64,000 nucleotides of DNA from Podarcis liolepis (GCA_965112155.1 OZ218102.1); one strand, 5' to 3'; positions 4,290 to 54,004 are shown, counted from the stretch's first letter. Translations and numbers: made by a program. The notes: a model not told the origin generated them from the sequence alone.

Positions 4290-6939
4290 TGCAAGCCTTT
4301 ATTTATTTATTTTTGGCTGAAGAGTAAGGCAAACGTTCTTTAAACAAATAAATAACTAAATACTTGCTGGTTATGATAAACAGTCTTAAGGAACTTTAAA
4401 CATTGCTTTTTTTAAAAAAATGAATAAAGTGTCAAACAATTGGTCAGAAACTCAAAAGATGCTAGCAGAGTAGTATCTCCCTATATACATAAGAACATAA
4501 CATGTTGGCGGCCATGCCAACTGCAGCATGAGAAATAACAGGCCAGCCCAGGCACAGTGTTTAATAGAGCCTTGGTTAAATGTACCCACAGCAAGGTTTA
4601 ATGGGGGGCTGAGGAGCCCTTAACCCAGCAGTTTAGCAGCTCACTGGGCAAAGCAACTCACGTCCCCATTAAACACATCTGTAGGGAAGAGAGGCATTTC
4701 ACAGAGCAGTTTAGTGAGCTCTGTTAAACCTTGAGTTGGGTGGGGTTGACAAGCTGATGGGCAGATGGGATCTCACATCCAGCCACTCCCGCATCTCCTT
4801 CAGACCTTCACTGAAATCTGAAAGCTCTGTGCTTCACTTTGAAGTCCTGACCTCACTATGACATCAGAGATTGACAATTGGAGAGCATGGGGGTGGAATG
4901 AGCTCAGTGAGTGAGTGGAAGGAGCTGGGGAAAATTTTTGGGAAGGTGTAAAGAGTAAGTGGAGTTGACAAGAAGAGTGAGCACCAGTGGAACACCTAGG
5001 TGGTGATGACGACAGCAACAGCTCTAGCTCTGCTTTATCTATTTGATTGTGTAGTTGGAGCGGGAAGTGAACTGTCCTCTTCATTGTCTTACAGATGCAG
5101 TGGAAGGGCATTTCCTCTGAACTCATACAACCCCTAACACCAAGCCACTTCCTCAGCCTTATCCGGGTTTTTCTTATTTGGGAATAGTCTCATTCAAGTA
5201 CTGTATGTGTGCAGAGCCATCTTTCCCATAGGGCTTAGTGGTGCGTCGCGCCAGCGTGCTGGCCTCTCAGGAACGCCCCAGCGAGTGGGGGAGCTGTGCG
5301 GCTTTGCCAGTGGCCTCCCCTTTCCCTGCATGCCCGCCAGCTGTGCCCTGCCAACCATATGGCTGGCGGGCGTGCAGCTTGCCTCCCAAGCTTCTGTAGG
5401 GATCGCTCTCCCACGGCAGCATGGGAGAGAGTTGCAAACCCCACCCCACCCCGGATGACTGGCAGTTCGCAGTTTCACCGCCCCACCCCCACTATCTGTG
5501 GTAATTTGGGGGTGCTGGGCAGGCAGATATTTGCACCCCGGCGCCGCATCTGCTAAAGAAATGGTAACATAAGAAATGGCAGTTTTACACATTTCTTATT
5601 TGCATTTCATAATGCTAGCTCCAATTCTTTTCTCATCTCTGTGGAAATATGAATGGTAAAGAACTCCCAAGGAACAATAAGTGGGTCTGGTTTTGCCACA
5701 CCTTGCACATCAGAAAGACATACAGTTGCAATCACTTTCTAACCACTTCTTTCATTTTCAAAGAACAAGAATAAAGGAATGTGACATGAAAGACCTGCCT
5801 ATTTGAATGGCCTATCCCATACCCCAGCTTTGCTCCAGCTTTAACCACAAAAATATAGCAACACATATGATTCTACATCATGATCAACTGCATGGGGTGC
5901 CACACAACAAATACCACATTTCTTCAGTATGTCTTGGGGGAGCAGTGCATAATTTCTGAGAGAGGAAAGCATTTGTCTGCCTTGGAAGGTGCACCATCTA
6001 ATCTAGGATGTGCATGAGGATTGTCCTTGGAAGAAGTGAGGAAAAGGCACTCTACAGAAACTCACTCTGCTTTAAACATTCCTGGAGTTTTAACTTTGGC
6101 ACAACAAAGAGATGGCAGGGCTAAGTCCAGTCCAGATGCAAAAAAGGAACTCTGCAGGAGAGGTCATTGGCCTAAGACTTTTTTCCAGCCCATCATTCCT
6201 TCAGGAGGGTGAAAGTTTCATTCTTTTATTTCTCCAACCTCTGGGACCCTCCCAGCTTGTGTGGCAAGCTGGGAGATTTCTTCCTCATGGCCTTCCCACA
6301 AGAACGTGGGGAGCTGCCATTGGACAAGTATTGACCACTTCACTTCTACGGAGTCTTTCCCAGCCCTACACAGAGCAAAGGGTAGCCCATAAGAAGAAGA
6401 AATCAAAAATCATATTAAGGCAATGCCTTTATTAGACCAGAGCAGTGTGGAAACTTCCAAGTTCTCCAGAACTCTTCAACCATCTAATCACATGGAAGAG
6501 CTCAAAATCTCACACACTATTTTGTGTCATTTGGGTTGGCCCAATAAATACATTGCCCTAATGTGGATTTTGGAGTTTTCCCTGCCTACCTACTCAAGGT
6601 CCCTTTAACTAGTGTTGAAATTGTGATCTGCATGCAAAGGAGAGCTATGGACCCCTCCCCCCCAAAAAAAAACTTCCTACCTAGCATGCAAATCAGAAAC
6701 CTTGCCAGGGGAAAAGGTGGCAACCCTGCCAAGGGTAGGAATCGCAAGCGTCCGGGTTGCCACATCTCTTGTTCTAACCAGGCTCCTATACCTTTAATAG
6801 TCGCCCGACATGAGAGACATTCGGAAGAGAAAGCTTTTCCCAGCCCGGCTGTGCAAATGTGGCGGGGAAGACCCCACCTGCTTAAACATCATGCAGCTTA
6901 TCATGCACCGGAAATAAAGGAAGGAATAAATAAATTAAA

Positions 6940-8430
6940 AGCGGAGAGGCCGCCCCAACCCCGCCAGTCTAGCAGCGGCTCCTGCCCTCGGCAGCCACGC
7001 GGCCTGCGGGAGTGCTGCGCCCCGACGCCACCTCCCTGGAGCCGCCGGCCGTCGCTCTGGTGAAGAAGATAGTCCTGGGCTCGCTCCTGGATTTGTAGCT
7101 GTACATGAAAGGCACGGTGGAGGCGAAGAGGAGCACGAGGGCCACGCCGAGGAAGATGGAGCCCGTCAGCCACTCCATCCATGCGAAGCCCAGCAGCACC
7201 ATGGCCAGGAAGGTGAACACCAGGCAGACACATCCCGCCTTCCGCCGGCAGGAGGCGCAGCAGTGGCCGTCGCCGGGGTCCTCCGAGCAAGAGGCGTCCG
7301 GGCTGCCCACGGTGATCGTGGCCGCGCCGCTGCTGCGGTCCGACGACGGCGAAGGCTGCCGGGCGGGGGGCCGGGGCACCTGCAGCAGCAGCAAGCGCTG
7401 GGCGCGCAGGTCGCGCAGCAGAGGCGCCCAGCCGCGCAGCTGCTGCAAGATGCCCTCCACCAGCTTGGTGTTGACGGGCAGGCTCTGCACGCGTCCGTCG
7501 GGCAGGGCCGTGCGGTGCCGGCACACCGGGCACGTGAGGTGGGAGTCGGGGGGAGCGCCCCGGCCCCGCGGAGAGTGCTCGCCGCCGCGCAGGTGCAGCT
7601 GCGCCAGGCAGTCCTGGCAGAAGGTGTGCAGGCACTCCAGCAGCTTGGGCGCGTGGCGCTCCAGGTCGAAGAAGTTGTAGCAGATGCGGCACTCGTACTC
7701 GCCCGAGCTGAGCAGCGCCTCGGGCTGCGGCGGCGCGGAAGGCGGCGCAGAAGGCACCCGGATGGCAGCTTCTGCAGCAGCAGCAGGAGCAGCAGCAGCA
7801 GGAGTAGGCTGCGCCTCGGTCCCTTTCAGCGCCTCCCCCTCCTTGCCATCCTGCCGAGCCCCTCCCTCGAGCTCGCCTGGGGTGCAGGCTTCCTGCTCTG
7901 CCTGCTGGTCCATGCTGTCCTCTTTGCCTCCGCGCATCAGGGGGCCGGGGCGGGAGATGCTCACTTTCCCCCTCCCCGGGATTCCGCGGGCTCTTCACAT
8001 GCTCAGCTGGCCGCAGTTGCGCGTGATGCTCCCCCTTCCTTCCTCTCTCCTTTGCCTGGCGAAGGAGGCTTCGGCACCCCCTCGGGATGGCTTGGATCTC
8101 AGCACGACTCCCCTCCCCTCCCCCGCCTCCGGTGCCCCTCTTAAGGCTGCTTCTCCCCAGCCCGCTGACGTCACGCGGGTAGCCCCCCTCCCGTGGCCCG
8201 AGCGGGCAGAGGCTCTCTCCGGTGGCGGCCCCGCCACTCCCTCTCCGAAGCGGTGGGCCTGCCTGTGCGTGAGCTCATTTCCTCGGAGAGGGAAGCCGGA
8301 AGCTGCCGCCTGGCTTAAGGGGGCGGGTTTGGGGGGGAGCACCGGCACGAGCGGAGGAAGGGGAGACGGCGGGGAGCGAGACCCGCACCGAAGTGCTGCT
8401 ATGCGGACAAGGCGTTCCACCCCATCCCGT
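6940..8430. promoter_or_regulatory. CpG island covering the RNF228 CDS and promoter (CRE 8166-8173, ETS CCGGAAG 8296-8302, GC box 8321-8326, TATA-like TTAAGA near 8144-8139 on minus)
   Basis: Dense CpG and high GC against an AT-rich background; motifs read directly; boundaries approximate. Confidence 0.75.
6969..7913 (-). CDS. RNF228: Single-exon RING-HC (C3HC4) E3 ubiquitin ligase with two C-terminal transmembrane helices, RNF183/RNF182/RNF152-like family; probable RNF228 (314 aa from ATG 7913, 322 aa from weaker in-frame ATG 7937)
   Basis: Motif CRIC..CLHTFCQDC..CPVCR followed by the family motif HRTALPDGRVQSLPVN, then a hydrophobic hairpin (VCLVFTFLAMVLLGFAW / IFLGVALVLLFASTVPF). ATG 7913 has strong Kozak context (agcATGg); the ORF-track start at 7964 is GTG. 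The symbol rests on family motifs plus recalled synteny (human RNF228 lies near SGPP2 on 2q36.1). Confidence 0.8.
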   Translation of the reverse strand: MDQQAEQEACTPGELEGGARQDGKEGEALKGTEAQPTPAAAAPAAAAEAAIRVPSAPPSAPPQPEALLSSGEYECRICYNFFDLERHAPKLLECLHTFCQDCLAQLHLRGGEHSPRGRGAPPDSHLTCPVCRHRTALPDGRVQSLPVNTKLVEGILQQLRGWAPLLRDLRAQRLLLLQVPRPPARQPSPSSDRSSGAATITVGSPDASCSEDPGDGHCCASCRRKAGCVCLVFTFLAMVLLGFAWMEWLTGSIFLGVALVLLFASTVPFMYSYKSRSEPRTIFFTRATAGGSREVASGRSTPAGRVAAEGRSRC

Positions 8431-8698
8431 GTGTGTGTGTGTGCGCAAGTGCTTTCAAATCCATATGTATATTCATATAGGTATAACAGAGAAAGGTAAA
8501 GAGGCAAGAGAGCCTCCCCTCCCCACCAGATTAGTTGCAGAATGCATTAAATTCACTAATTCAAAACGCATTCAAATAAAGGTGCCCGTCCACAGCCTCC
8601 CGTGAGTGCCAGGAGGTTCCCATGCTCCTTTGGAACCGTTTGTGAAATAAAGCTTATTTAACAGCACTATTCTTTTAGAAGTGTTATGGGAGAGAGCG

Positions 8699-8822
8699 AG
8701 AATCATAGAGTTGGAAAGACACTCCGTGGGTCATCTAGTTCAATGCGGGAATATTTTGCCCAATGTGGGGCTTGAACCCACGACCCTGAGATGAAGAGTC
8801 TTAGGCTCTACCAACTGAGCTA
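8699..8822 (-). mobile_element. tRNA-Lys-derived SINE with a CR1-type 3' tail
   Basis: Minus strand reads tagctcagttggtagagc..gactctt..ctcagggtcgtgggttcaagccccacattgggc, then ..ttccaactctatgattct. Confidence 0.8.
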
Positions 8823-9096
8823 TATATAAGGGAGTCTGCACTACGTTCAGGCTCAGCTGCCTGCTTTTGTTGTTGTTTCTCTACCATTAGGTATCTTGCT
8901 GTTAATTTATCCACTAAGTCCCATGTTTGTATTATTAGCCACACTTGGTAAAAGTTTGGGTTCAGCTGTGTGAATGTTTAAATAATGGCTGCACTTAATA
9001 AGAGGCTGCAAATCATGCCATGCACATAAGGGGGTAAAACAAACTTTGCATTACAATTTATAAAATTCAGTATTGTCAAAAAAGAGTGATGAGGGG

Positions 9097-9442
9097 AAAA
9101 GGTAAAGGGACCCCTGACCATAAGGTCCAGTTGCGGGCGACTCTGGGGTTGTGGCGCTCATCTCGCTTTATTAGCCGAGGGAGCTGGTGTACAGCTTCCG
9201 GGTCATGTGGCCAGCATGACTAAGCCGCTTCTGGTGAACCAGCTCAGTGCACGGAAACGCTGTTTACCTTCCCGCCAGAGCGGTACCTATTTATTTACTT
9301 ACACTTTGACATGCTTTCAAACTGCTAGGTTGGCGGGAGCAGGGACCGAGCAACAGGAGCTCACCCCGTCACGGGGCTTCGAACTGCCAACCTTCTGATT
9401 GGCAAGCCCTAGGCTCTGTGGTTTAACCCACAACCACCCCCT
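9097..9442 (-). mobile_element. Sauria SINE
   Basis: Reverse (ACCTTT)n tail aaggtaaagggacccctg; body ccgggtcatgtggccagcatgact; tRNA-like head. Confidence 0.88.
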
Positions 9443-10217
9443 AAAGGGGAACAACATTATTTTTGTTAATAACAGCACATACAATTTTGGCATGTATTTA
9501 TTTTTTTATTACCTTGGGTTGAGGGTAGATGTTCTAAGGCAGGGGTGCATAAACAACTACCTCAGTTTCATATACATTGCCATCGGAAGAGGACAGAGCA
9601 TTAAGCCCAGAGCCTAAAATTACCAACTGCACATCTGTATCCCTGTCCTTGCAGTGATGCTGCTGCCTGCCATAGAACAGCCAGCACTAGACTGTATGGA
9701 CCAAAGGTACCTTCTTATGCACCTTTTTCAGGCTCCACTGAGTAGCATTGAGGCTGGTTGGTTTTCATTTTTAAAGCATATAAAACATTTTGCCCCATCT
9801 TTCTTCCAGTGGTGTTCAAGGCAGATCTTAACAAGAAAAGATTGAAACAAAATTCTAATACAAAGCAAAAAAACACACAAACAAAACCCAGAATGATCCA
9901 AAGCCACAGACAACAAATAACAACATCCATTAAGACCAATTTCCAGCAACATTAGAACAATTTCCCAATCAGACTTAAAACACTTAGTGCCCAAAAGCCT
10001 TCCTAAAAATGCTTCAGGGGCATTAGCAAGAGACCAAAGCAGACTTCCCTTCAGAAAGAGTTACAGAGTTACAGAAGAAAGGATCCTTCAGATCCTTCAG
10101 TTCCAAAGAACTTGTGGCCCTCCAGGTGTTGTTAGACTCCATGTTCCATTAGCCTCAGCCAACATCTGGATGACCACAGATTACCAGTCCATGCCATACA
10201 TAAAGTAATATAAAGTA

Positions 10218-10990
10218 ACAAACAAGATGAACTTTAACAGGGAGAAATGTAAAGTATTGCACTTGGGCAAAAAAAATGAGAGGCACAAATACAAGATGGG
10301 TGACACCTGGCTTGAGAGCAGTACATGTGAAAAGGATCTAGGAGTCTTGGTTGACCACAAACTTGACATGAGCCAACAGTGTGACGCGGCAGCTAAAAAG
10401 GCCAGTGCAATTCTGGGCTGCATCAATAGGAGTATAGCATCTAGATCAAGGGAAGTAATAGTGCCACTGTATTCTGCTCTGGTCAGACCTCACCTGGAGT
10501 ACTGTGTCCAGTTCTGGGCACCACAGTTCAAGAAGGACGCTGACAAACTGGAACGTGTCCAGAGGAGGGCAACCAAAATGGTCAAAGGCCTGGAAACGAT
10601 GCCTTATGAGGAACGGCTAAGGGAGCTGGGCATGTTTAGCCTGGAGAAGAGGAGGTTAAGGGGTGAATGATAGCCATGTTCAAATATATAAAAGGATGTC
10701 ACATAGAGGAGGGAGAAAGGTTGTTTTCTGCTGCTCCAGAGAAGCAGACATGGAGCAATGGATCCAAACTACAAGAAAGAAGATTCCACCTAAACATTAG
10801 GAAGAACTTCCTGACAGTAAGAGCTGTTCGACAGTGGAATTTGCTGCCAAGGAGTGTGGTGGAGTCTCCTTTAGAGGTCTTTAAGCAGAGGCTTGACAAC
10901 CATATGTCAGGAGTGCTCTGATGGTGTTTCCTGCTTGGCAGGGGGTTGGACTCGATGGCCCTTGTGGTCTCTTCCAACTCTATGATTCTA
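10218..10990 (+). mobile_element. 5'-truncated CR1 LINE (ORF2 C-terminus plus 3' end)
   Basis: Translations [43 protein letters not shown] and RKNFLTVRAVRQWN; one frameshift near 10667; ends in ccaactctatgattcta. Confidence 0.95.
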
Positions 10991-11163
10991 ATCATCAGTA
11001 TTTTGATTTGAAACCAACTGGAAGCTATTATCAATAACATGGTGTTCTATGTTCCCAACAGGCAGCCTGCTGTGAACAATTTCAGGCTAACAATCCTAAC
11101 CTGCCCCCATTGACAGTGCTTGGCATAATGGCTGGGCTACTACCACATCCTCAGCCCTACTGA

Positions 11164-11300
11164 TCATAGAATTGTAGAGTTAGGGACCCTGAGGATCATC
11201 TAGTCCAGCCCCCTGCAATGCAGGAATATGCAGCTGTCCCATACAGGGATCCAACCTGCAATCTTGACTTATCAGCACCATGCTCTAACCAATTGAGCTA
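11164..11300 (-). mobile_element. tRNA-Ile-derived SINE with a CR1-type 3' tail
   Basis: Minus strand reads tagctcaattggttagagcatggtgctgataa..gatccctgtatgggaca, then ggactagatgatcc..actctacaattctatgat. Confidence 0.78.
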
Positions 11301-11832
11301 TCATGGCAGCCATGGTGGAAGGTGAAAGAGGAATGATAAGGGCTGATGTCTTCACATGGCACTTAAGAAAACAGCTCAGGATTTGTCCCATCCCCACCCT
11401 CCAAACACCCCATTTGGGGGGTTTCCACTGGTTCCCACCAGCAGGGAATCTGCCACCATGGCACTTTCCCATCTTGCAACTAGTGGGAAGCTGGCTGAGC
11501 CAGGGTAGTTGGGCAGAAGGACACCTACCAAACCCACCATCCCTAGTCCAGCACAAGGGGAGGACAGCATTGCTCTGTTATTCACCACTTTGTGGACCTG
11601 TTAAAGCTCCTGGACACAGGAGGCAGCCTCAGAGTGTGCTGCAGTGGTCCACATTTGAAAGTGTGTGTTATCTTCAAGTTCTAGGAACTGACACACCTGG
11701 TGGAGAAGCCTAAGCTGGGCAAAGATGCATCTGGCTACAGCCATCACCTAGACACCCAAGGTTAAGTCCAGGCCCAGAACCACCCATTCCACAAATGGGG
11801 CACAAAACGGCTTATCAGAATATCATCAAATA

Positions 11833-12216
11833 CAGTGGTACCTCGCAAGACGAATGCCTCACAAGACAAAAAAACTCGCTAGACGAAAGGTTTTTCCGTT
11901 TTCGATTTGCCTCGCAAGACGAATTTCCCTATGGGCTTGTTTCGCAAGACGAAAACGTCTCGCGACTTTGTTTTCTTTGTCTAAAAAATTTCCCTTCAAT
12001 TTTTGAACTTCTCTTTACAGTATGTGTGACTTTAAAGAGCAGTTAATAAAGTGTTGTTGTACCAAATTTGGCTTTGTTTGGACTTTTTTTGACCATAGGA
12101 ACACATTAATTGATTTTCAATGCATTCCTATGGGATTTCGTGATTCGCAAGACGAAAAATTCGCTAGACGACAAAACTTGCGGAACGAATTAATTTCGTC
12201 TTGCGGGGCACCACTG
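11833..12216. mobile_element. Tc1/mariner-type MITE, family B (gcaagacgaa repeats)
   Basis: TIRs cagtggtacctcgcaagacgaa / ttcgtcttgcggggcaccactg; TA TSD. Confidence 0.88.
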
Positions 12217-12557
12217 TAGTAGCAACATAAAATGTTACATGAGAGTTCTTTCTGCCTTATTTGGAAAACTTGCAATGGCTCACTCACTGTTGACCTTCAA
12301 TCACACACTCTATTTCTTTGGCAGATCTCGTTCTAAAGTGTTCCCTTTACACAACAGATGCAACCCACATCCTAATTGCAAGAGGCTCGTTTATTTTAAT
12401 GGAACCGAATCGCACTCCATGGCAGCTTTTGCTAATGTGATACAAAAAATAAGAATTTTAATTCTCTTGTTTGCTTTGAGGCAAAATGAATAATAAAAAA
12501 CCCATTGTGACCTATCCAAAGATAGATAAAACAAATATGAAACAGGTTCTAACATGC

Positions 12558-13366
12558 TGTGACAGACACCCTCACTGAAGGTGGGTGCTGGGTAATGTGG
12601 CTGATTTTATGGGTGTATTCATAGATTTAAAAAACCCTCCCCTTTCTAACCTCAGAAGAGGTCTATAATTAACTATTTCTGGTAATGTTTTTATTATTAT
12701 TACTAAACAGCAGCAAAGTTTTGTGCTTCTGTGAAGGCTGCCTGATAGCCACTCTCCCCCCCCCCCCATCCAGTGGGTGAAAGTATGAGAAATCACTTCT
12801 GCAACAAAACTGAATTGTTTATTTATTTACACTCTATGAGGGTTTAAAGTGTGATAGCTTCACAAGTGAGGACAAAGCTTCTTTTAAGACACACATTCAT
12901 AACAGAGAATTTCAAAGCAGCACTAGTTTCCAAACCAAGTCTCAGGAAGACTTTTTCCACCTGGAATAGCTATCAGTGTCCTAACTAGCAACACCCACGT
13001 AGCCCCTTCCAAGATTTAGCTTCCTCTCAGGGAATCCAAACTGAGTTGCACTACCTGGCTCGCCCCACTTAGATAGTCCAAGCTCCCAGCTCCCCACAGT
13101 AACATTTAGTCCCTATCTATACCCACTGACAGGTAATCCATGTCTGAGCCCACAGAGATAGTCAGAACCCCCCAATGCCCACACTGATGGAAAATCCCTT
13201 CTATCCTCAATGACAGATAGTCCCTATCTGAACCCTCTCAGTCAGAGACATCATCTGCCCACAGTGACAGAAAGTCCCTCTCTCTCACTCCTGATTGGCT
13301 GGGGGTTTCATCAGCTCTCGATGGTGGCTCCATCACCAGAGGCTGTCCCAGGGCCTCCCCACCACA
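12558..13366 (-). mobile_element. Solo LTR, 809 bp
   Basis: TG..CA termini (tgtgacag..ccaccaca); 5-bp TSD CATGC at 12553-12557 and 13367-13371; minus-strand AATAAA pair at 12818-12827 suggests orientation. Confidence 0.7.
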
Positions 13367-16031
13367 CATGCATTCTTTGAAAACTAGTATGAAACCACAT
13401 GCTTTAAATACATTTTCCTGGATGTGCGGTATACTAATGGTCCCTAATATTACTAGACAAGGAGTTCCAGAGAAAAAGCACGGATTGATTCTTTGCAATG
13501 AAACAATGGACATTATTTGGCACTTATAAAAGTGCCAGTTCCACAGACTTAAATGTTGAGAGGCTAATGTGTTCCTTAAAGTAAACTGGCCCCATTGGGC
13601 TTACACATTGGTAAAGTTATTTATAAGCACTTCAACAATTTAACCTCTTAACTCTCCACGACACCCCCCTTCCCCCCACCCAAAAAACTGAATGACATCA
13701 GAGGGTGCTTATGCTATGTACAAAAGGACTGCAGTTATGACAGTCACAATCAAACATATTTAAGTATCATAAATATTACAGAGAAAAAACAGCACACTGA
13801 AGCATGCATTCTAAGCATGGGGTGTTCCTTCCTTCTGCATAATCTAAAATGAATGTTTAAAAGGACCCTTGAATTCAAGCTCCCATGTACAGCCTTTTAT
13901 TTTACAAGTTGTGTACGAGCAAACCCTAGCCACAGTCACATGGCTAACAGGCTGCAAATGTTACGCAGTTTCCCAAAGTTCAGATCATGCATATGAAATC
14001 TCAGATTCAGACAGGAATATTTTAGAGCATTTATAGTTTTAAATCTCAAAGCACAGCAAGCAGGACTTCAGATTAAGCAGCATTTGGAGTTTTACTTTCA
14101 AAAGGCATTACGTGTAAACCTAAGGTAGATATGTTTGGAACAGTTACAATGCAAAATATACAGGTACTTATCATCTGAGTATACACGTTCAGTTTACAGA
14201 GCTCCTTTACATAGCATTTATCCTTAATCTTTACCGTATTTCTCTTTATTTATTTAGTTTAGCATTGCATTTAAATCCTCCAAGGAACTGAAGGCAGTAT
14301 AATACATAGTTCGCCCCCTTATTCAGATGATCCATTGAGCTTCATGAATGGAGCCATGAACCCAGGTCCTAGTCCAATATGCTGACTCACTCAAAGGGGT
14401 CAGCAAATGTACAGCACACTCTGACACAGCAGCTTGGAAACTATAGGAGCTTCAAGACAGACTGGGCCATTCTCATAGCTTTCCTTAGGAAATTAGGTGG
14501 ATCTAAGGCATTTCCCCCTTCCCTCTTGGAAATAAGCTGGGAGAATCACAACTGGAACTTTGCCCACAAGGCACTCTGAGTCCCAGACCTCATTTGGTGT
14601 AGCTGCTTCTTCAGAAACAGGAATGGGGTTTACATTTGCTTTAGGCACTCATTGTTGTTGAAAGTTCTAGCAAGACTGGGAGACTCTAACCTCAATGAGA
14701 TAGCTACTGCACGCTCAAAACGTTGTACAGAAACACAATAGTCCATGTTCGATTTATTAAATTTTATCCCTGCAACTTGGTAGGTTATGAGTTTGAGGTA
14801 AGGGGTTGTTAACCAGTGGCCCTCCCATCTACAGATACATACTACAACTTCCATCATCCCTGACTTTTATCATTCTGGGTAGGAGCTGATGGGAGCTGGA
14901 GTCCCACAACAATTGGAGGGTCCCTGTTTCCCCATCCCTGCTTTTGATCAACACAACGATCCATTCAAATTCCAGTGGATACACAGCTCCAAAGTTAGAG
15001 TTTAAAAAAACACACAATTGCATCTGTTGTGGGAGTGATAATGGGATCAGGCCACACATGAATTGAGGCTATGACAACCTTCTTTCTTCCTCTGCTGCAG
15101 TCCTGAGGAAAATCAGCTATTTGCTTTGGTGAGGGGCTTCCTTTGGTTGCAAGTCCCCACTTGCATATATTTAGCAATCTCAGTTCTTTGAGTGCTAGTC
15201 CTTATGTAGTACTGTATGTACCCAAAAAAGGCACTGTCCATGCAGAAGAGGGAGCTTTGAGCAGGTTTAGGGGAAGCCCAAGGCTTGCAGAAGTATAGAA
15301 AGAACATCACAGGGAGGACAGAGTATACATACAGAGTATGGCAGTGGAATGCTGACTGGATGTTGCCAAGAGGGAAGGAAAACCAGGGGAGGAGTAGAAA
15401 TGGACTGGATTGTCCTGGAAGAAGACAGGGCTGCAGCTAGCCAGCCATGAGCAGAAGCACTTCTTGCTGCAACTTTTTGTTGCAGGTTCCCCTTGTAGAT
15501 ATTAATAGCAAAATCAGTTCTTTGGGTGCTGGTTCTTATGCAGCCAAAGTGTCATTACCAAGAACAAGAAGGGGATATCAACACATTTAGGAGAAGTACA
15601 AAAAATATTTAGGGAGAAAAACTATGGGGCAAATGTCTTTCCCACCAAAAAAACAAAACGTCCAAAGAAGACTGTAAACGCAGAATACTGTCTGACTGCT
15701 GGTGAGAAAGGAGTGGAACCCTGAAGAGGAGCATTGCCACACTGCAAGATGTCATACATACACATTTATGTACATTTTCTACAATGTAACTCATGCTATA
15801 AGATGCTATTTTTGTAGATGCATCATATGCCTTGTGGGTTTTTTCATGAACATGTTAATGATTTATATGAATGTTTAATGGTGTTTATGTTTTTAAGTAT
15901 AAACCACTTTGAGATCTTGGTAACAAGTGAGTAATAAACCTATTAACAACAACAACAACAACAGCAACAACAACACTGATAATTCTCTATATGGAGACAA
16001 ATCCCTTTAATTTCTGATTTCAGCAGTCTTT

Positions 16032-16376
16032 TAATAATAATAATAATAATAATTTATTATTTGTACCCCGCCCATCTGGCTGGGTTTCCCCAGCCACTCT
16101 GGGCGGCTTCCACAGAAACCAAAAAACATTAAAATATCATACATTAAAAGCTTCCCTAAATAGGGCCACCTTAAGATGTTTTCTGAATGTCAGGTAGTTG
16201 TCCATCACCTTGACATCCGATGGGAGGGCATTCCACAGGGCGGGCGCCACCACCGAAAAGGCCCTCTGCCTGGTTCCCTGTAGCTTCGCTTCTCGCAATG
16301 AGGGAACCGCCAGAAGGCCCTCGGCGCTGGACCTCAGTGTCCGGGCAGAACGATGGGGGTGGAGACGCTCCTTCAG
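16032..16376 (-). mobile_element. L2-type LINE 3' fragment
   Basis: Same 3' end; reverse translation includes RNQAFSVVAP-like and LWNALP-like L2 ORF2 terminal motifs. Confidence 0.8.
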
Positions 16377-17035
16377 AAGAAAAGTTCATTTTCTTCTCTC
16401 ACAGGGAAGAAGTGAGAACTAGTCAGAGAAATCAATGGAGAAAACAAATATTTTACTGTATCTGTGACCAGGCTCCAGCCTGTTCACCCCAAAACAAAAA
16501 GGTACAATCAAAAATAAAAGTTCACATTTATTTTATGTGAAACATTTGATTTTTTGATTTTTTTTTTATTTAGTTGTGGAATATTTAAAAATGTGCCTTT
16601 TCTGCAGGCAAGGCAGTGGAGCACTGGAAGTGACTTGGAAGGACTGGGTTACACTTTGCATGAGCTGTTTTTTGACTGTGAATGAGCCTCAGCCCCACTT
16701 CTTACCAGCAATATTAACAGTAGACTACAGTGCAAAGCAATCTCAAACTAGTGTCTCTGAGAGCAGCTCCACAGCCTTCAATAGGGGCATAATAGAGCAG
16801 ACTACCTTACACAGTTGCACTGTAACCTAGGCTGACTCCCAACTTGTAACAGGTGATATGATGTAACTGGGCAACATGGGAGGGTTGTTGTACACAATTA
16901 ATTCAACTCCTAACAGCAATATAATTTCAGAATTGACAGGGCTGTTGTAAACCATTATCTCTCAGCCACAACCCCTTCCAACACAGGAATGGATGCTTTT
17001 GCATTGGTATTTGCAATGGCAGGGCAATTTTTCAA

Positions 17036-17037
<2 letters not shown>

Positions 17038-17070
<33 letters not shown>
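17038..17070. repeat. (GAT)n microsatellite
   Basis: Read directly. Confidence 0.95.
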
Positions 17071-17797
17071 AAAGAAATGGCTTAAATGCCTCTCTTATTA
17101 TTATTTGTCTGGGGATGGAAACACATTAAAATCTGTTCCATTGATTTCTACGGTTATCTCCCACTTGTACTGGAGGGGTGGGGTCCATATTACAATGAGA
17201 GTCAGAAAATGGGAACCGCCCAAAATCTTGTGGCATATTCAAGATTAACATATTTATTATAGATCATCTGCTGCCTTAGATGGAGCATAAAGTGCCCCTC
17301 TCCAAAGTCAGGGTGCACAGTCAAGTCATTTTGGCAGCTTAGGCAGAAACACCAGCATGGACCTCTTCCCCCCTCCCTGGCAATAAAAAAAACACAGCAA
17401 TCGTTGCTGAGTGTACATGGCTCCCCTAATAGGGCCAGCCTATTAGGCAGAGTGAGGTGTGGGCAGGGAGCAGTAGGATGGTGCTGAAGGGCAGAGCTGT
17501 GCATGCAATCCAGCCCCGTACTACCCTGGCCAACACCCTTTAAGTTAGTCTGCTGTCCCTTCACCAGTGCTGAAGTACGATGCCGCTGCTAGCCTGGTTA
17601 GTTTCTGTGCATGGAATGGAAAGGCTTCCCGAAGTAAGCATTCGGCTGGCCACCGTGAGAATAGGATGCTGGTCTGCGATGGGCCATTGACCTGATCTAA
17701 CAGGTCTCTTCTGACGCTCTTTGCCTAACGGTAGGGCCGGTCCCCATTAAGCCCTTAGGTGCCAGAGGTCCACCAGAACGTCTTCAGGTGCAAGAAC

Positions 17798-18598
17798 CTA
17801 AAAGGGAAGGACCAGGCAGGGTGGGCAAGGAGGGGATTCCCTCTGGTATCTCCTAATCTCTGTGTAACAGAGGATGAGGCAACAGGGCAGGATGCAGCAG
17901 AGGGAAGCCCCCAAGAATAGGACCCACGGGCTCCAGTTCCACAGCAGAGCGCTAATGAACGCTATGGAGAAGAACACCCCGAAGAGGAGGCAGAAGGCGA
18001 CCCACACCCAAGGAATTTTCTCCACGAGCCGCTGGGGGCGCCCGTGGCAAGTGTGGCATCCCGAGCCCGGCTCCGCTTCTCCGTCGGGAACTGCAGAAGG
18101 AAGCGGCTGGGGCGCCGTCCCGTCGCTGCTACTCCTGCCGCCGCCCTGGTCCGGCAGGGGGCGCTGCTGGGCAGGCTGGGGTGCCGCTTGCGAAGGCCGA
18201 ACAGGCTGCAAGGGCTCTGGAGGCAGCGGGCAGCTTGTGGCGGCCAGTGCGCGGTCGACGGGCAGGTTGGACACGCGGCCGTCTGGCAGGGCTGTCCGGT
18301 GCCTGCAGAGCGGGCAAGTGATGGTGGCCGCGCCGGGGTTACTGTGGCGGAGGCCGCGCCTGCAGCGCTCGGCTTGATGTACCTGGCTCAGGCAATCCAG
18401 GCAGAAAGTGTGGAGGCACTCGAGTTGTCGGGGAGGGCGGCACTCCACGTCGAAAGGGCCGTAGCAGATTCGGCATTCCTCCGTCCTGGAAGGGGCGGAC
18501 ACCCCCGCCGGCTCCCCTTGGGAACCTTCCGGCTCCCCATCCGGACCAGCTTTTGCCTTCAAGCTGTTGTCGCCGCAATCGTCTGCGGTGTCGCCCAT
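17798..18598 (-). CDS. Second single-exon RING-HC plus two-TM protein (266 aa), tandem RNF228-like paralogue
   Basis: Intact ORF with strong Kozak context (acgATGg); CRIC..CLHTFCLDC..CPLCR and HRTALPDGRVSNLPV; 23/34 and 18/21 identities to the two RING blocks of the 6969-7913 gene; C-terminal hydrophobic segments; sits in its own CpG island. Confidence 0.85.
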   Translation of the reverse strand: MGDTADDCGDNSLKAKAGPDGEPEGSQGEPAGVSAPSRTEECRICYGPFDVECRPPRQLECLHTFCLDCLSQVHQAERCRRGLRHSNPGAATITCPLCRHRTALPDGRVSNLPVDRALAATSCPLPPEPLQPVRPSQAAPQPAQQRPLPDQGGGRSSSDGTAPQPLPSAVPDGEAEPGSGCHTCHGRPQRLVEKIPWVWVAFCLLFGVFFSIAFISALLWNWSPWVLFLGASLCCILPCCLILCYTEIRRYQRESPPCPPCLVLPF

Positions 18599-18790
18599 CG
18601 TCTCATCCGAGGGGTGGGGCGCCTCTCAGGAAACCTCCTGCCCTGCCCGGCCTTCCTCTCGGCTGGCTCGACTCCACGGGAAAAGGGGGTGGTGGGAAAA
18701 ACCTCAGCTCCGTGGGTGGGAAAGCAAATGCTGGGCGGGGGGATATTGGCGGCTGCGGAGCGCTGAAGCCAAAACAGGTGGTCGTTTCTC
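17960..18790. promoter_or_regulatory. CpG island over the RNF228-like paralogue and its 5' end
   Basis: High CpG density relative to flanks; boundaries approximate. Confidence 0.65.
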
Positions 18791-19308
18791 TCTCCCTCTG
18801 TCAATGCATTTCAGGTTGCGTGGTTCCCCCTCCCCTGTCACTGCTTCCGGGTCTCTTAGATCCTATAGCGGTCCTTTCCAAGTGTAGCCACAGGATGTTC
18901 CCCCTCCCCCTCCATCATGAGCTGGTCGATGATGTCATTCGAGGGGGTTCTGCATGGATTGCGGACATGCCAAGCAGTGATTCCAGCGTCAATTCCCGGA
19001 AACGATCATTCACTATGTAACCCTTCCATCCCCTGCGGATAGAAAGCCTGCATGTGGCAATGATTTTGGTTGTTTTTTTTAAACAAAAAAACAACACACA
19101 CACACACATTTGAATTTCGATAAAGGAGGGCTGGCTCTCCGGACGTTCTATGAAAGCGTGCAATATGTGTTCATCTTCTGGAACCCCTCCTAAAATCTGA
19201 AGGTGGGAAGGAGGCACAGACAATCACCCACATATGACGCTGAGGCCCTCAAGGCAGGACTGGGGAACCTACCGCCCTCCAGGTGTTGTTGGAGTCCAAC
19301 TCACATCA

Positions 19309-19885
19309 TAATAGAATCATAGAATTGGAAGGGACCCTGAGGGTCATCTAGTCCAACCCCCTGCAATGCAAGAATTTCAACTAGCTCATACATGACAGGG
19401 GGACATCCATCCTCGGCCTAAAAACCTCCAAGGATGGAGAGTCCACAACCTCACATGGAAGTCTGTTCCACTGTCAAACAGCTCTTATCATCATAGAGTT
19501 CTTCCTAGTTTTCAGTCAGTATCTTCTTTCTTGTAACTTGAATTCATTGGTTCCGGTCACAACCTCCAGAGCAGGAGAAAACAATATTGCACCATCTATC
19601 ATATGGTAAGCCCTTTAAATAAACAGGGGTACCTTGAGTTACATATGCTTCAGGTTACAGACTCCACTAACCCAGAAATAGTACCTCGGGTTAAGAACTT
19701 TGCTTCAGGATGAGAACAGAAATCGTGCAGCGGTGGGGCGGCAGTGGGAGGCCCCATTAGCTAAAGTGGTACCTCAGGTTAAGAACAGTTTCAGGTTAAG
19801 AACGGACCTCCGGAATGAATTAAGTACTTAACCCGAGGTACCACTGTATGAAGATGGCTACCATATCTCCACTCACTCTCCTCTG
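19309..19885 (-). mobile_element. CR1 3' fragment interrupted by a MITE (19624-19846)
   Basis: atagaatcatagaattggaagggacc tail in reverse; CR1 sequence resumes (tgaagatggctaccatatctcc) after the MITE. Confidence 0.8.
19624..19846. mobile_element. Tc1/mariner-type MITE, family A
   Basis: TIRs cagtggtacctcgggtta/taacccgaggtaccactg (left TIR degenerate); inserted in a CR1. Confidence 0.85.
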
Positions 19886-21285
19886 GCCAGGGAAGACGAG
19901 AGTTGAAGTACACCACCACCACAGGGCCAGAGCTTTCCATCCCTCTGAGAATGCACAGTAGGAAGAGCATTGTGGTTCCTTTTGGCTCCCATCCACATTC
20001 TTTCAATTCTACCTTACTACTCATCTGGTTCAAAGAGCTGCCCCTTTAATATTATTAAAGCAGCCAAACCTTCCATCAAACCCAGTGTACCTGTGCATCC
20101 TCTGCCCCATCTTGTCTGATGAAAGTGGCATTCAGATCCCGAATAGCTAACCTGGTTTGCATCTGCAACACTGGTAGACATCGTAACCACACTATGACAT
20201 CTTGCTTTGTGTCCCTGTTCTTGATTGACCAAGTCTTATGACTTCTTCGCACATTACTCCTGAAAGATACACTTTCTCCTGGTGATGGGGAGAAGGGGAT
20301 TCATATGAGAAATGAAACTTTTTGTGTTGATTTCAGAGAAAAGATGCACAAGCTTAAACATTATTTCAAGAGTTCTGACCAAAATTTGTCAATGAAAGAC
20401 CTCTGTAAACAGGGATTAGGAGCACAGGAAAGTTGCCTTTCCTGGGACAGACCAGTTGGCTATCCCTAGCTAGCAGGAACAGTGATCAGGGATGATGGGA
20501 GTTATAGTCCAACAACATCTGGTGACCCAAGGCTGAAAAAGGCTGGTCTACACTAACTTGAAGAAGCTCCCCTGCGTCCCAAATGAGAGTCTGTCCCTGG
20601 CCCACTTGGAAATCTCCTGCGTTTCAGGTAGGTAGTCCTTACCAGCCCTGCCTCAGGATGTTGGAGATTTGACCTGGGACCTTTTGCATGGAAAGCATGA
20701 GCTCTACCACTGGGCTATAGTCCTTCTTCAAGGTTGGGGCAAATTCTGTGATGAAACCTAAATAAAGGCTAGCATGCTCTGTCCAACAGATTATCACAAA
20801 ATGATTAAGTAAACCAGTTAGAGGTTGTCATGATTATAATAGAAACAAATAGATAAATAGACAGGCAGGCAGACAGACGGACGGATGGATGGATGGCCTG
20901 GATAGTCATTTTAGGATAAAGTAAGTTCAATGGGTAAGTACAAATGCTGTTCCCAACCTATTAGGATTTTGGCTGTGCCGTTTATGGAGAATGTGCCTAT
21001 CATTGATAAACAAATTGACTTCACTTTCTCAAAGATGACAAACAGCTGTTGCTTCTTTGTCCCAGAATCCAAGGGTGTGACCTGATATTTGTAGCACCTG
21101 GGAGGAACTTTTTCAGCCTACGGTCTCCTTCTTGGGCCTAAATCTACAAGCTGATCTCATGGATGCAACACCAGCTTTATACCCGTCTCCCCCTTCTTGT
21201 GTAGCATCTTGCCTAACTACAAGATCTGGAGGACTTGAAAGCTTGTCACATTTTAGGGATATTTGGGACATTCCCAATAAAGATA

Positions 21286-30048: not shown

Positions 30049-31189
30049 ACCGTAAAAGGATTTCCTTCTGAGTGCACAAGATTACTTGGGACAGTATGTC
30101 CCTGCATCCCTTCTCTTTGTCCTCACACAGAGAGGTTGCACCTAGGGGCTGGTTTGGTTGGCCCTTGCCAAAGGTCCAGGCCCAAGGAGGGCACAAAAAC
30201 TGAACCTCTCCACTCTGGCTTAGAGTGGCTAGAAGCCAGTCTGCCCATCCACACACTGCCTGGACTGCCCTTCTGCTGCTCTGGGCATCTGGACAAGGTT
30301 TTCAGGCTCCTCCAGGTGCCACGGTGGGGGAATCCAGTCACTGGTATGGGGCATAGCAACAGCTCTGCGGGGCCTCCTTCTCAGTTGGCCAGCAGTGCTA
30401 TTAGAAGTGCAAGTGGACTCAGAGGGGAGAAAGAGGGAGAGAGTAATAAGAGTTGCCAGAGGAGGGAAAGGAAAGGAAAGGCAGAAGGAGGAAGAATGGA
30501 AAGCAGTGAGTGGAAGGAAGGAGGAAGGCTGGGAGGCAGGTAGACAGACTGATAGAGGAGGAGGAAAGGCAGAGCAGAGCAGACCCAACCTTGATGGCTG
30601 TGGACTTTAGGCTCTCAAATTTCAGCAGTGCCCTGTGTGGTACTAAAATTCAGTGCCCCTGTCTCTCAGGCTCCATTCTACAGCACTGTCACAGCGCCCA
30701 GTGCTGCTGAACCAGTTGTACTGCCCTAAAACCGCCTCTTCATGGAGGAAGTCACTAGCAGAGCGCGAAAGGCAGTGAGAAGGAAACTTTTGGGGTTTCT
30801 GGTCCTTGGTCTCCGATACATCTCATTGCCAAGGGTGCAAGTGATGCGGCAGGGTGCCGATACAGCTCATTGCCAAGGGCACAAGAGCTGAGGTACACCT
30901 CTGTCCCTGAAACAGCCTTGAAGGCACGTTCAGCTAAGAATCAGTGCCTTGTCCAAGTTCCTTCAAGGAGCTTCCTGGCGGAGTGGCGATTTGAACCTGG
31001 GTCTCAGCCCAACATCTAACCACCACCAGAGCAGATGCTCTATATAGCCAGAAGAAAGATCATTTGCAGTATTTCCCAAGGAAGATAGGGAAGTAGTCAG
31101 GCAGGTGTGGAGTTGGCTGGGTTTGAATGGCATTGGTTTCAGCTCCACATGGAGCAGGTTCGTGCAGCAATCTTGCGCTCCTGTCGGAC

Positions 31190-31960
31190 TAAGAGATCAC
31201 CCTGTCACCTCTCCCGCCTTCGTCATGCAAGGCGGGGCGGGGCGGGGCAAGGAGGGTCGTGGGCAGCGGCCAGGGGTGGGCGGGGCCTCGCCGCCTGCAC
31301 CTGTCCGCGGGGCGCCAGGAGCCCCGCCCTTTCTCCTTGGCTCCTCCGCAACGCGGTGGCCGGCCGGCCGGGCTGGGCTGTGTTTGCGCGCCGCGCCTGG
31401 GCGGGGGAAGCGAGTCCCCAGCCGCCGGGAAGGAGGATGGCCTGCCTGCTGGACTCGCAGCCCGTGGCCCGCTTCCAGCGCTGCTGCGGGCTCTTTCCGG
31501 CCTCCGAGGGAGCGGCGGAGCAGGCCGGCAAGGTGGGGAACGGCAGCCCCCTCCACCTGCCCGCGAGGGACGTCGCCAATGGGCGCAGCAGTCCGGCCAA
31601 GCAGCGCGCCCACCCTCCGGCCCCCGGCGCCGCCAGCAACGGCTGGAAGGTAAGAAAGTTACAAAGGGAGAGGAAGGGGTTAATTGATACAGCGGCGGGG
31701 AGGGGGAGAGGAAAAGGTCCCGGGGCTCAAGCTGTAGCCTCTGACCCAGAAGCGCGTCCTAGAGACAGATAAGGAGCTTGGCACGTTGGACGGAAGAAAT
31801 GGCACCTCCTTGAAAGCAGGTGAGTTGCGAGACCGCGTGAAATGCTTGCTATCCCGAGGAAATGGACTCTTCTCAGTCTTGCGCAGGTTTCCCCTGTCCG
31901 GGTCTCTCGCCCCACTATCTCGCTCCTTCCCCCCCCCCCCTTTTTCTCGCGGAGGCAGAT
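31190..31960 (+). promoter_or_regulatory. SGPP2 CpG-island promoter with tandem Sp/KLF GC boxes (31231-31248, 31273-31286)
   Basis: GGCGGGGCGGGGCGGGGC and GGGGTGGGCGGGGC lie 150-200 bp upstream of the ATG; CpG-rich through exon 1; no obvious TATA box. Confidence 0.8.
31437..31649 (+). CDS. SGPP2: SGPP2 coding exon 1 (71 codons)
   Basis: aggATGg start; MACLLDSQPVARFQRCCGLFP..NGWK; donor AAG|gtaaga; inside a CpG island. Confidence 0.93.
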
Positions 31961-53069: not shown

Positions 53070-53824
53070 TCTTGCAGTGAGATATGCTAGCACAAATTGT
53101 TATTTTTTCAGGTCTTTAATAATCTAGCTCTTCATGGCTTGCCATATCTTTACCCAAGGCATATATTTGCACAAGAAACTAAGTTCATAAAATGTGGAGC
53201 CCTTTTTTTCCCTTTTAAAGTTGAAATTTGCTCTTTTTGTTTTGATGGTCCCTGTTGTGAAGTTTAGCATTTTTAACCTGCTTCTTTCTATACACTCCAG
53301 TAATATTTCCTGTTGTTATTTCATTCACAGCAATATAAACTACAGAAAGCCAGAGGTAAATTATGCAATATTGCTGGTGTAACTTACCTCTTTTCCAAAC
53401 TCTAAACAGGAGCAGGGGCTCCCCTAGCAGAGGGGTAATAATCCCTTAAAACAGAGTTTGACATACACCGCTTTTTTGCCAGTATAACTTTCTCTGGGTT
53501 ACTTAGTCACATGTCTCTCCCCGCACCCAGTGTCTTGTCCCCACCATTCCCCTGAAACATCCTTTTGTGGGGACTTAATTCAGAGTCAGCTTTGCTAGCT
53601 GAGCCCCAGTTGATCTGGGATCAAGGAGCTATGCTGGCATATATCTGGCTGAGCTGGAGAGATGCCGATATGCTGGTCTCAAAAGTACCATGCCAAGATG
53701 ACAGGAGTGAATTGCTGTAACTGAAAATGTGTCTGAGACTTGAGGGGGGGTGCTACTTGGGTGAAAGGCAGGGTATAAATGAAATGAAATAAGCACATCT
53801 CTGTTATCTGTGTGCTGTCTCCAG

Positions 53825-54004
53825 GTGGTTATGTACATTGGCCAAGTCTCAAAGGACCTGCTCAAGTGGCCCCGCCCTTGTTCTCCACCTGTTGTCAAGC
53901 TAGAAAAAAGGACCACTGCAGAGTATGGAATGCCATCCACACATGCAATGGCAGCAACCGCCATTTCTTTTACATTTGTGGTTACAACTGTGAACAAGTA
54001 CAAG
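53825..54004 (+). CDS. SGPP2: SGPP2 exon 3 (60 codons; C1 KDLLKWPRP and C2 PSTH motifs)
   Basis: Acceptor tctccag|GTG; [35 protein letters not shown]; donor AAG|gtaggc. Confidence 0.96.

Follow-up and report, generated by a model that had tools for sequence, protein, structure and literature searches.

RNF228 and the RNF183 family are the closest described systems to the genes reported here. Passages on human RNF228 (HGNC:55809) describe a single-exon gene that was recently annotated by means of phyloCSF and Ribo-Seq (PMC12807706), and passages on the RNF183 family describe proteins that join an N-terminal C3HC4 RING to one or two C-terminal transmembrane domains (PMC7313026). Here, we analyzed 64,000 nucleotides of DNA from the lizard Podarcis liolepis (GCA_965112155.1 OZ218102.1), a stretch that we call the window, and computed the open reading frames (ORFs), domains, RING fold, kinship, adjacency, and domain-level constraint of two RING genes in it, termed A and B. 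We consider it likely that these are tandem, same-strand RING-HC ligase genes, A being the orthologue of RNF228 and B a tandem duplicate of RNF228 that arose on the squamate stem. As in RNF228, the single-exon coding sequence of each gene specifies a C3HC4 RING at the N-terminus and a hydrophobic hairpin of two helices at the C-terminus. The architecture of B also matches that of the RNF183 family; it is a shared architecture and no proof of membership. Lysosomal location and expression restricted to certain tissues are further traits of the RNF183 family. The features of the two genes are as follows (o/e, observed/expected ratio).

6969..7913, minus strand: gene A, by sequence the RNF228 orthologue, single-exon coding sequence (ORF list, identity to P. 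muralis, tree).
7521..7691, minus strand: C3HC4 RING of A, residues 75-131 (Pfam zf-RING_5, zf-RING_UBOX, and zf-C3HC4 over residues 74-133; ligand columns invariant).
7095..7244, minus strand: C-terminal hydrophobic hairpin of A, about residues 224-273 (Kyte-Doolittle hydropathy; alignment with the two-helix region of RNF228).
6900..8500, no strand: CpG-rich island over A (GC 0.68, CpG o/e 0.77; GC 0.706 in the 7001-8000 bin).
17798..18598, minus strand: gene B, putative squamate-only RNF228 paralogue, single-exon coding sequence, 266 amino acids (ORF list, Podarcis identities, B clade).
18305..18475, minus strand: C3HC4 RING of B, residues 42-98 (Pfam zf-RING_UBOX, 27.0 bits against a cut-off of 25.2).
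17837..18010, minus strand: two predicted membrane helices of B, residues 197-219 and 224-254 (AlphaFold2; hydropathy windows 191-249).
17700..19100, no strand: CpG-rich island over B and its 5' flank (GC 0.61, CpG o/e 0.68; GC 0.652 in the 18001-19000 bin).

A preliminary description of this DNA had reported two single-exon RING ORFs on one strand, about 10 kb apart, and we found both, on the minus strand at 6969-7913 and 17798-18598. It had also credited each gene with a strong Kozak ATG, a CpG island of its own, and a membrane anchor. All three hold: the ATGs of both A and B have A at -3 and G at +4, the two islands have the values listed above, and two C-terminal helices are predicted by hydropathy for A and B and by AlphaFold2 for B. 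Hydropathy placed two adjoining hydrophobic segments at the C-terminus of A and B alike, and a Pfam scan of both proteins returned RING models and no other family.

Judged by its sequence, gene A is the lizard orthologue of RNF228, in line with the earlier claim that one of the two genes is RNF228. The protein is 314 amino acids long when counted from the ATG at 7913; the ORF list starts from a GTG at 7964, upstream of that ATG, and a second in-frame ATG at 7937, eight codons upstream, is the start of the P. muralis RefSeq model. A was 95% identical to "RNF228 [Podarcis muralis]" over 100% coverage, and its matches fell stepwise to 51-59% in other squamates and about 36-47% in birds, turtles, mammals, and frogs. 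These identities fit a lacertid near Podarcis, and the protein collection contained no exact copy of the window's own proteins. Matches named RNF228 came from snakes, birds, turtles, mammals, and frogs, and RNF228 also occurs in sharks and coelacanth. The ORF is uninterrupted and aligned end to end with the P. muralis and P. lilfordi models. Within the RNF228 clade, which spans sharks to mammals, the place of A follows the species tree, with geckos first, then scincoids, then episquamates. In the hairpin of A, 19-residue Kyte-Doolittle windows reached at least 1.6 over residues 224-250 and 243-273.

Many bird, turtle, and mammal proteins of the RNF228 clade are misnamed RNF223, RNF225, RNF224, or RNF152-like, and fusion-like names ("TFIID subunit 4-like," "forkhead box D1-like") also occur there. 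Since so many proteins that carry the labels RNF223 or RNF225 fall in the RNF228 clade, these labels are unreliable, and going by the sequences, the naming of RNF228 is unsettled well outside squamates too.

Upstream of the ATG of gene B, no other in-frame ATG intervenes before a stop, which lies 10 codons away. A separate ATG, out of frame and in weak context, sits 10 nt ahead of this start, at 18608-18610 (minus strand), and the P. raffonei model of B begins four codons further in than the B of the window. The eight zinc ligands that had been noted earlier (C42, C45, C61, H63, C66, C69, C95, and C98) were invariant in a 76-row family alignment and occupy the same columns in A. Residues I44, P96, and R99 were at least 90% conserved in that alignment, R99 being the Arg after the last Cys that had been singled out as the linchpin. 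In RING ligases, the positions of I44, P96, and R99 contact ubiquitin-charged E2 (E2~Ub).

We modeled B with AlphaFold2 from the 76-row alignment. The RING (residues 41-120) was predicted at a local distance difference test score (pLDDT) of 86-95, the linker was disordered, and the two membrane helices, at pLDDT 80-83, were joined by a four-residue turn. An earlier model from a 12-row alignment was poor (mean pLDDT 47.8) and contained the same two helices. The best Foldseek matches of the modeled RING were the RINGs of TRIM2, TRIM21, TRIM23, and TRIM32 (template modeling score 0.63-0.78 by target length, E values of 1e-4 to 3e-3, sequence identity 23-34%), and sequence matches of B in the PDB were to TRIM-type RINGs only (E values of 6e-4 to 3e-3). 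The C3HC4 order and spacing are as expected, and in the model the RING of B adopts the cross-brace RING fold. The RING is common to B and these TRIM proteins, whose RINGs are active and several of which have been solved with E2 or E2~Ub; B, in contrast, has no B-box or coiled coil and is predicted to be membrane anchored. Downstream of B, AATAAA-like signals lie near 17255 and 17105, and a run of ATC triplets lies at about 17040-17075 (minus strand), approximately 730 nt past the stop codon.

We then compared B with proteins in public gene sets. B was 96% identical to P. raffonei XP_053243419.1, which is labeled RNF223, with the next match at 40% or less; P. lilfordi CAI5775556.1 (266 amino acids) was 95% identical to B. 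The 90% cluster of the P. raffonei model includes CAI5775556.1 and a P. muralis UniProt model as well. Models from P. raffonei, P. lilfordi, and P. muralis thus exist, and pipelines already predict B. With a profile built from the B alignment, every B-type protein reached at least 344 bits and no other protein exceeded 197 bits. In an exhaustive hidden Markov model (HMM) search of 1.84 billion cluster representatives, three reached the B level, at 435, 342, and 273 bits; the next one, at 170 bits, was A-type. The lower matches included a second, partial Varanus protein of the toxicoferan B type, a Crotalus protein named "ZFPM1-like," and additional scincoid copies from Lerista, Tiliqua, and Hemicordylus. 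A protein of the tegu Salvator merianae, labeled RNF182, has a hairpin of the lacertid B type. Overall, B-type copies were seen in Podarcis, tegu, snakes, iguanians, Varanus, and scincoids, and only in squamates among the proteins examined.

The names given to B-type proteins in NCBI, Ensembl-derived UniProt, and submitter sets are RNF223, RNF183, RNF186, RNF182, RNF228, "ZFPM1-like," and "hypothetical." We found no published description of a squamate B paralogue in searches of the main texts of one paper library, where none of the listed papers that mention RNF228 dealt with reptiles. The earlier claim of an undescribed gene therefore stands with regard to publications and falls with regard to databases: B is present in public gene sets but misnamed, and is novel to the literature only.

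Several of these proteins have features of their own. For P. muralis, the UniProt model of B (P0119, 231 amino acids) exits the ORF inside the first membrane helix, at about 17950 (minus strand), and continues in a frame that matches the window ORF 17202-17564 (minus strand), approximately 400 nt downstream of the exit. The would-be splice donor is not GT in the window, and an unspliced contig at 17811-18043 crosses the point; the spliced form may reflect either an artefact of the pipeline or a difference between species. In scincoids, a single contig has at least three copies, as in Lerista (008131, 008133, and 008134), Tiliqua (P0044, P0128, and P0133), and Hemicordylus (P0040, P0125, and P0130). 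Some scincoid-type B copies, such as P0130 (Hemicordylus) and P0161 (Logan), carry long Gly/Ser/Asp/Cys-rich repeat tails after the hairpin.

Adjacency of A and B outside the window was read from consecutive locus tags or accessions on contigs of equal length in four genomes. A and B were consecutive in Naja (E2320_008937 and E2320_008938), Phrynocephalus (JRQ81_017897 and JRQ81_017898), and P. lilfordi (CAI5775555 and CAI5775556), and the Lerista copies had near-consecutive tags (lerEdw1_008131, lerEdw1_008133, and lerEdw1_008134). The window itself held no third copy by tblastn with A and B, all other matches having E values of at least 0.9.

To place B, we built trees from sets of proteins in which birds, mammals, and frogs had been thinned. 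An early tree held 59 of 117 proteins plus the two window proteins. A careful IQ-TREE analysis, rooted on fishes and also used for a first approximately unbiased (AU) test, held 47 plus the two window rows (49 in all); a tree with scincoid and Varanus copies added, used for a second AU test, held 43 plus two; and a tree rooted on shark RNF228 held 47 plus two. The tree sets contained no verified human RNF222-RNF227 references. In the 49-row tree, squamates formed one group (98/99), with an A clade of 19 rows in which geckos were basal (97/97) and a B clade of 11 rows (89/82) made up of a Lacertoidea B group (100/99) and a Toxicofera B group (99/99). With the scincoid and Varanus rows added, squamates again grouped (100), and the B super-clade grew to 15 rows with a support of 83 in the Shimodaira-Hasegawa-like approximate likelihood ratio test (SH-aLRT). 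In the shark-rooted tree, the supports were 100 for squamates, 90 for a B super-clade of 17 rows, and 99 for the A clade. The partial second copy of Varanus fell inside Toxicofera B at 100, and two Logan rows joined the scincoid B copies Lerista_134 and Tiliqua P0128 at 96 in the shark-rooted tree. Lerista_133 together with Tiliqua P0044, as well as Hemicordylus P0125, were placed inside the A clade as later scincoid duplicates.

These trees suggest that B nests inside the vertebrate RNF228 clade as a squamate in-paralogue and does not group with any other named family member that is broadly conserved, in agreement with the extra paralogue proposed earlier. Although labeled RNF223 in P. raffonei and P. 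lilfordi, B grouped with squamate RNF228. The B profile likewise scored RNF228-type proteins higher (107-170 bits) than rows named RNF186-like, RNF182-like, or RNF223-like (77-85 bits). Among language-model clusters, those nearest to B carry the automatic names RNF182, RNF152, and RNF186-like (scores 0.95-0.96), which is a lead only, and B had no Pfam match to the RNF152 C-terminal family (PF19325 RNF152_C).

AU tests rejected a grouping of B with episquamate A, as expected if the duplication came after the scincoid split (p = 0.0035), and a grouping of all non-gecko copies, as expected if it came after the gecko split (p = 0.017). B is probably sister to all squamate A copies, geckos included, which would place the duplication at or before the squamate crown; this date is not settled and is only probable because the AU groups were named post hoc and long branches are involved. 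A duplication of that age is not a lizard-level event. Of the lineage-restricted duplication kept by selection that the preliminary description had proposed, the restriction to squamates and the constraint on domains stand, while the trees and AU tests point to an origin older than lizard level.

A and B were 33% identical over 228 aligned columns by BLASTP (E = 8e-28), and the two RING blocks had 23 of 34 and 18 of 21 identical residues, exactly the counts reported before. Over 55 RING-core codons, dS was 0.87, dN 0.17, and their ratio 0.20. We considered gene conversion as a cause of the conserved RING core, and the high synonymous divergence rules it out; the conserved core instead reflects purifying selection. 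The linkers and flanks had been said to align no longer by eye; this was not borne out for the membrane hairpins of A and B, which are still alignable, though weakly.

A and B differ after the RING and in the hairpin. In a 23-row alignment, a post-RING helix was present in A and in every non-squamate RNF228, from fishes to mammals, whereas B rows carry a proline-rich stretch where this helix sits, and the AlphaFold2 model of B has merely a four-residue helix at 116-119 after the RING. Non-squamate RNF228 hairpins were highly uniform in the same alignment and have a strongly conserved C-terminal end; both squamate copies lack this end and have a short inter-helix turn. In squamate A, the end of helix 1 is altered and the turn is shortened relative to non-squamate RNF228. 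Toxicoferan B matches the non-squamate form in short motifs where helix 1 ends and within helix 2. Ancestral hairpin characters are thus found in B and lost from all A copies, including those of geckos, which agrees with an early duplication. The hairpins of lacertoid and snake B have just 12 of 54 residues in common, and lacertoid B has cysteine pairs inside and after helix 2, as do some scincoid copies. We suggest that divergence after the duplication was complementary, A keeping the post-RING helix and B losing it, and that the hairpin of lacertoid B was apparently rebuilt and gained cysteine clusters; that these cysteines are lipidated is speculation.

Several observations weigh against B as a squamate-stem duplicate of RNF228 that still encodes a ligase. 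Both groups used in the AU tests were chosen after a tree had been seen, support for the B clade is moderate (89/82, 83, and 90 in the three trees), and the branches leading to Podarcis B are long (0.99 + 0.75 in the 49-row tree). A tree of 36 plus two rows was rooted with remote outgroups, namely a lamprey "RNF182-like" protein, an Oryzias "RNF223-like" protein, a garbled Serrasalmus model, and two Logan rows. In this tree the root on lamprey was placed among squamate rows at a fork that lacked support, and the Oryzias protein joined the B group at an SH-aLRT support of 92, with end branches of 2.2-3.2. The Oryzias grouping and the misplaced root indicate that long-branch pull is at work and that the placement of B depends on sampling. 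The predicted proteins of four gecko species and one Logan protein yielded A only and no B, and no match listing contained a tuatara protein. Among Podarcis proteins, variable columns were slightly more frequent in B (18 of approximately 262) than in A (14 of approximately 310). In bulk RNA sequencing (RNA-seq) of a related species (2026, about 12% of the run read), no read fell on the B ORF; 14,604 reads fell on the 4.8-kb B stretch, in the bins of two high-copy repeats, with near-zero depth elsewhere. As for RNF228 itself, passages on it offer a predicted RING fold and predicted docking of UBE2D2, the assays there being those of RNF227 (PMC13061254).

Some of these points would fit a lacertid B that is a decaying or near-neutral duplicate, an open frame without a working protein. 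The lacertoid B stem is very long, as noted for the 49-row tree and again in the early tree (1.72), the hairpin has drifted far from that of snake B, no RNA read fell on the ORF in the one bulk run, and B varies slightly more than A among Podarcis. However, the distribution of changes makes decay unlikely. An intact ORF is present in the window species, P. raffonei, P. lilfordi, and the tegu model. We compared the B proteins of the window species, P. raffonei, and P. lilfordi (the partial P. muralis P0119 and gapped columns were excluded) and found that only two of the 18 variable columns fell in the RING and hairpin (152 residues), as against 16 in the N-terminus and linker (110 residues), a depletion with a Fisher p of 3e-5. 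By region, the counts were one in 75 residues for the RING and tail, one in 77 for the hairpin region, nine in 36 for the N-terminus, and seven in 74 for the linker. The same pattern appeared at greater distance: lacertid and tegu B kept 43 of 68 RING and 29 of 58 hairpin residues despite only 7 of 36 in the N-terminus. Decay is further at odds with the retention of all eight zinc ligands, the strong ATG context, and the CpG island. A DNA contig of a related species across 16380-18646 had 41 substitutions; among its listed indels, the one in the B ORF was a 3-nt in-frame deletion, and the flanks had indels of 10, 3, and 1 nt.

In toxicoferans, 49-51 of 54 hairpin residues of B were identical between snake, Anolis, and agamid, and the N-termini of the same set had only 6-13 of 29-40 residues in common. 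Overall, B appears to have been kept intact with constrained domains. Neither outcome that the preliminary description had named as fatal to its claim, kinship with another conserved family member or a disrupted, silent, and neutrally evolving gene, was observed, although the bulk RNA-seq run had no read on B. A 3-nt loss at 18132 (about codon 156 of B), in a run of Ser codons, was seen in one related-species contig at a depth of 8.5 of 26.8, and may be a polymorphism. In a small run that is only presumed to be RNA, low-depth contigs covered 17082-17305 and 17811-18043. Depth in this run was confined to 16566 to 18175, that is, to the 3' part of the B ORF and approximately 1.2 kb downstream, and the unique flanks had nothing; this fits a 3'-biased B transcript and proves nothing.

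A very unlikely alternative is that the B clade is an artefact, in which separate duplications in lacertoids, toxicoferans, and scincoids were joined by long-branch attraction. The later scincoid duplicates inside the A clade indicate that the locus duplicates readily, support for the B clade is moderate as noted above, and the tree program flagged long branches that meet. Nevertheless, the AU test rejected B with episquamate A at the p value given above, the partial second copy of Varanus was recovered firmly within Toxicofera B, and lacertoid and toxicoferan B agree against A in the loss of the post-RING helix and in substitutions around the first RING loop and the helix end. That B is instead a paralogue of older date, or belongs to a different named family (RNF223, for example), and was kept beside RNF228 by squamates only, is most improbable: the public names RNF223, RNF183, RNF186, and RNF182, the Oryzias grouping, and toxicoferan B hairpin motifs that are common to fish and coelacanth RNF228 and absent from squamate A speak for it, but squamate A and B formed one clade in the trees rooted on fish or shark RNF228 (98/99, 100, and 100), the B profile favored RNF228-type proteins, the Oryzias grouping rests on end branches of 2.5 to 3.2, and the gene would have to have been lost independently in mammals, birds, crocodilians, turtles, frogs, and fishes.

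Returning to B as a tandem duplicate of RNF228, we think that it most likely acts as a membrane-tethered E3 ligase, by analogy with known RING ligases and with the RNF183 family. We infer for B its ligase activity, topology, membrane compartment, substrates, and expression. The RING, which would necessarily be cytosolic, may bind and activate ubiquitin-charged E2. A long disordered Pro/Gln-rich linker would tether the RING to the C-terminal two-helix hairpin; the hairpin would anchor the enzyme in a membrane, and hairpin and linker together might set its location and choose nearby substrates. B-type copies persist in scincoids, lacertoids, Varanus, iguanians, and snakes, and B in snakes, iguanians, and Varanus keeps hairpin motifs like those of non-squamate RNF228. 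A bolder and as a whole rather doubtful proposal is that B is a working, squamate-specific ligase of pre-crown origin that splits the role of RNF228 with A, the post-RING helix residing in A and an ancestral-like hairpin, almost unchanged among snakes, iguanians, and agamids, in B. Under this proposal, the cysteines of lacertoid B, if lipidated, could shift the membrane or the substrates. Geckos would have lost B, and the scincoid array would have grown to at least three copies, some of them with long repeat tails.

Gene B of the window has A on one side and, on the other, a plus-strand gene with a PAP2-domain exon, which we located with PAP2 motif patterns. Two features belong or may belong to this neighbor.

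53789..54004, plus strand: exon of the neighboring gene, part of a PAP2 phosphatase domain (Pfam PF01569, 27.2 bits, E = 3.7e-6, exactly at the cut-off).
31107..31772, plus strand: CpG-rich ORF (GC 0.60, CpG o/e 0.60 over 30500-32000; ORF list).

The PAP2-exon gene is probably of the SGPP type and may be SGPP2. The ORF at 31107-31772 had no Pfam match; it is possibly the first exon of the PAP2 neighbor, and so may be SGPP2 exon 1. PAX3 lies outside the 64-kb window. Among the genes given for a human 2q36 deletion, RNF228 stands together with PAX3 and SGPP2 (PMC12549294). The earlier assignment to the SGPP2 locus, supported by this listing and the PAP2 exon, is tentative. Between A and B, at 10227-10921 (plus strand), two adjoining ORFs have the look of a retroelement polymerase tail by eye and had no Pfam match. 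High-copy interspersed repeats flank B at 15922-16404 and 19303-19946; their summed contig depth was 1e5 to 4e6 in DNA runs, and they attracted RNA reads by the hundreds to thousands, in which loose ends and strand-switch joints were frequent.

The six or more wrong names that B carries would introduce errors into orthology tables and into expression work and selection scans on lizards and snakes, and a single consistent name, for example RNF228-like, would mend its annotation. Naming aside, B is an ordinary lineage-specific gene duplicate. RNF228 is a young entry of the human gene set, and the passages on it assign it no known function (PMC12807706 and PMC13061254). Squamates offer a natural experiment on this gene: they have two copies, some more than 100 million years apart, in which the RING was kept and other parts diverged. 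This pattern of divergence suggests that the post-RING helix and the membrane hairpin are separable functional modules.

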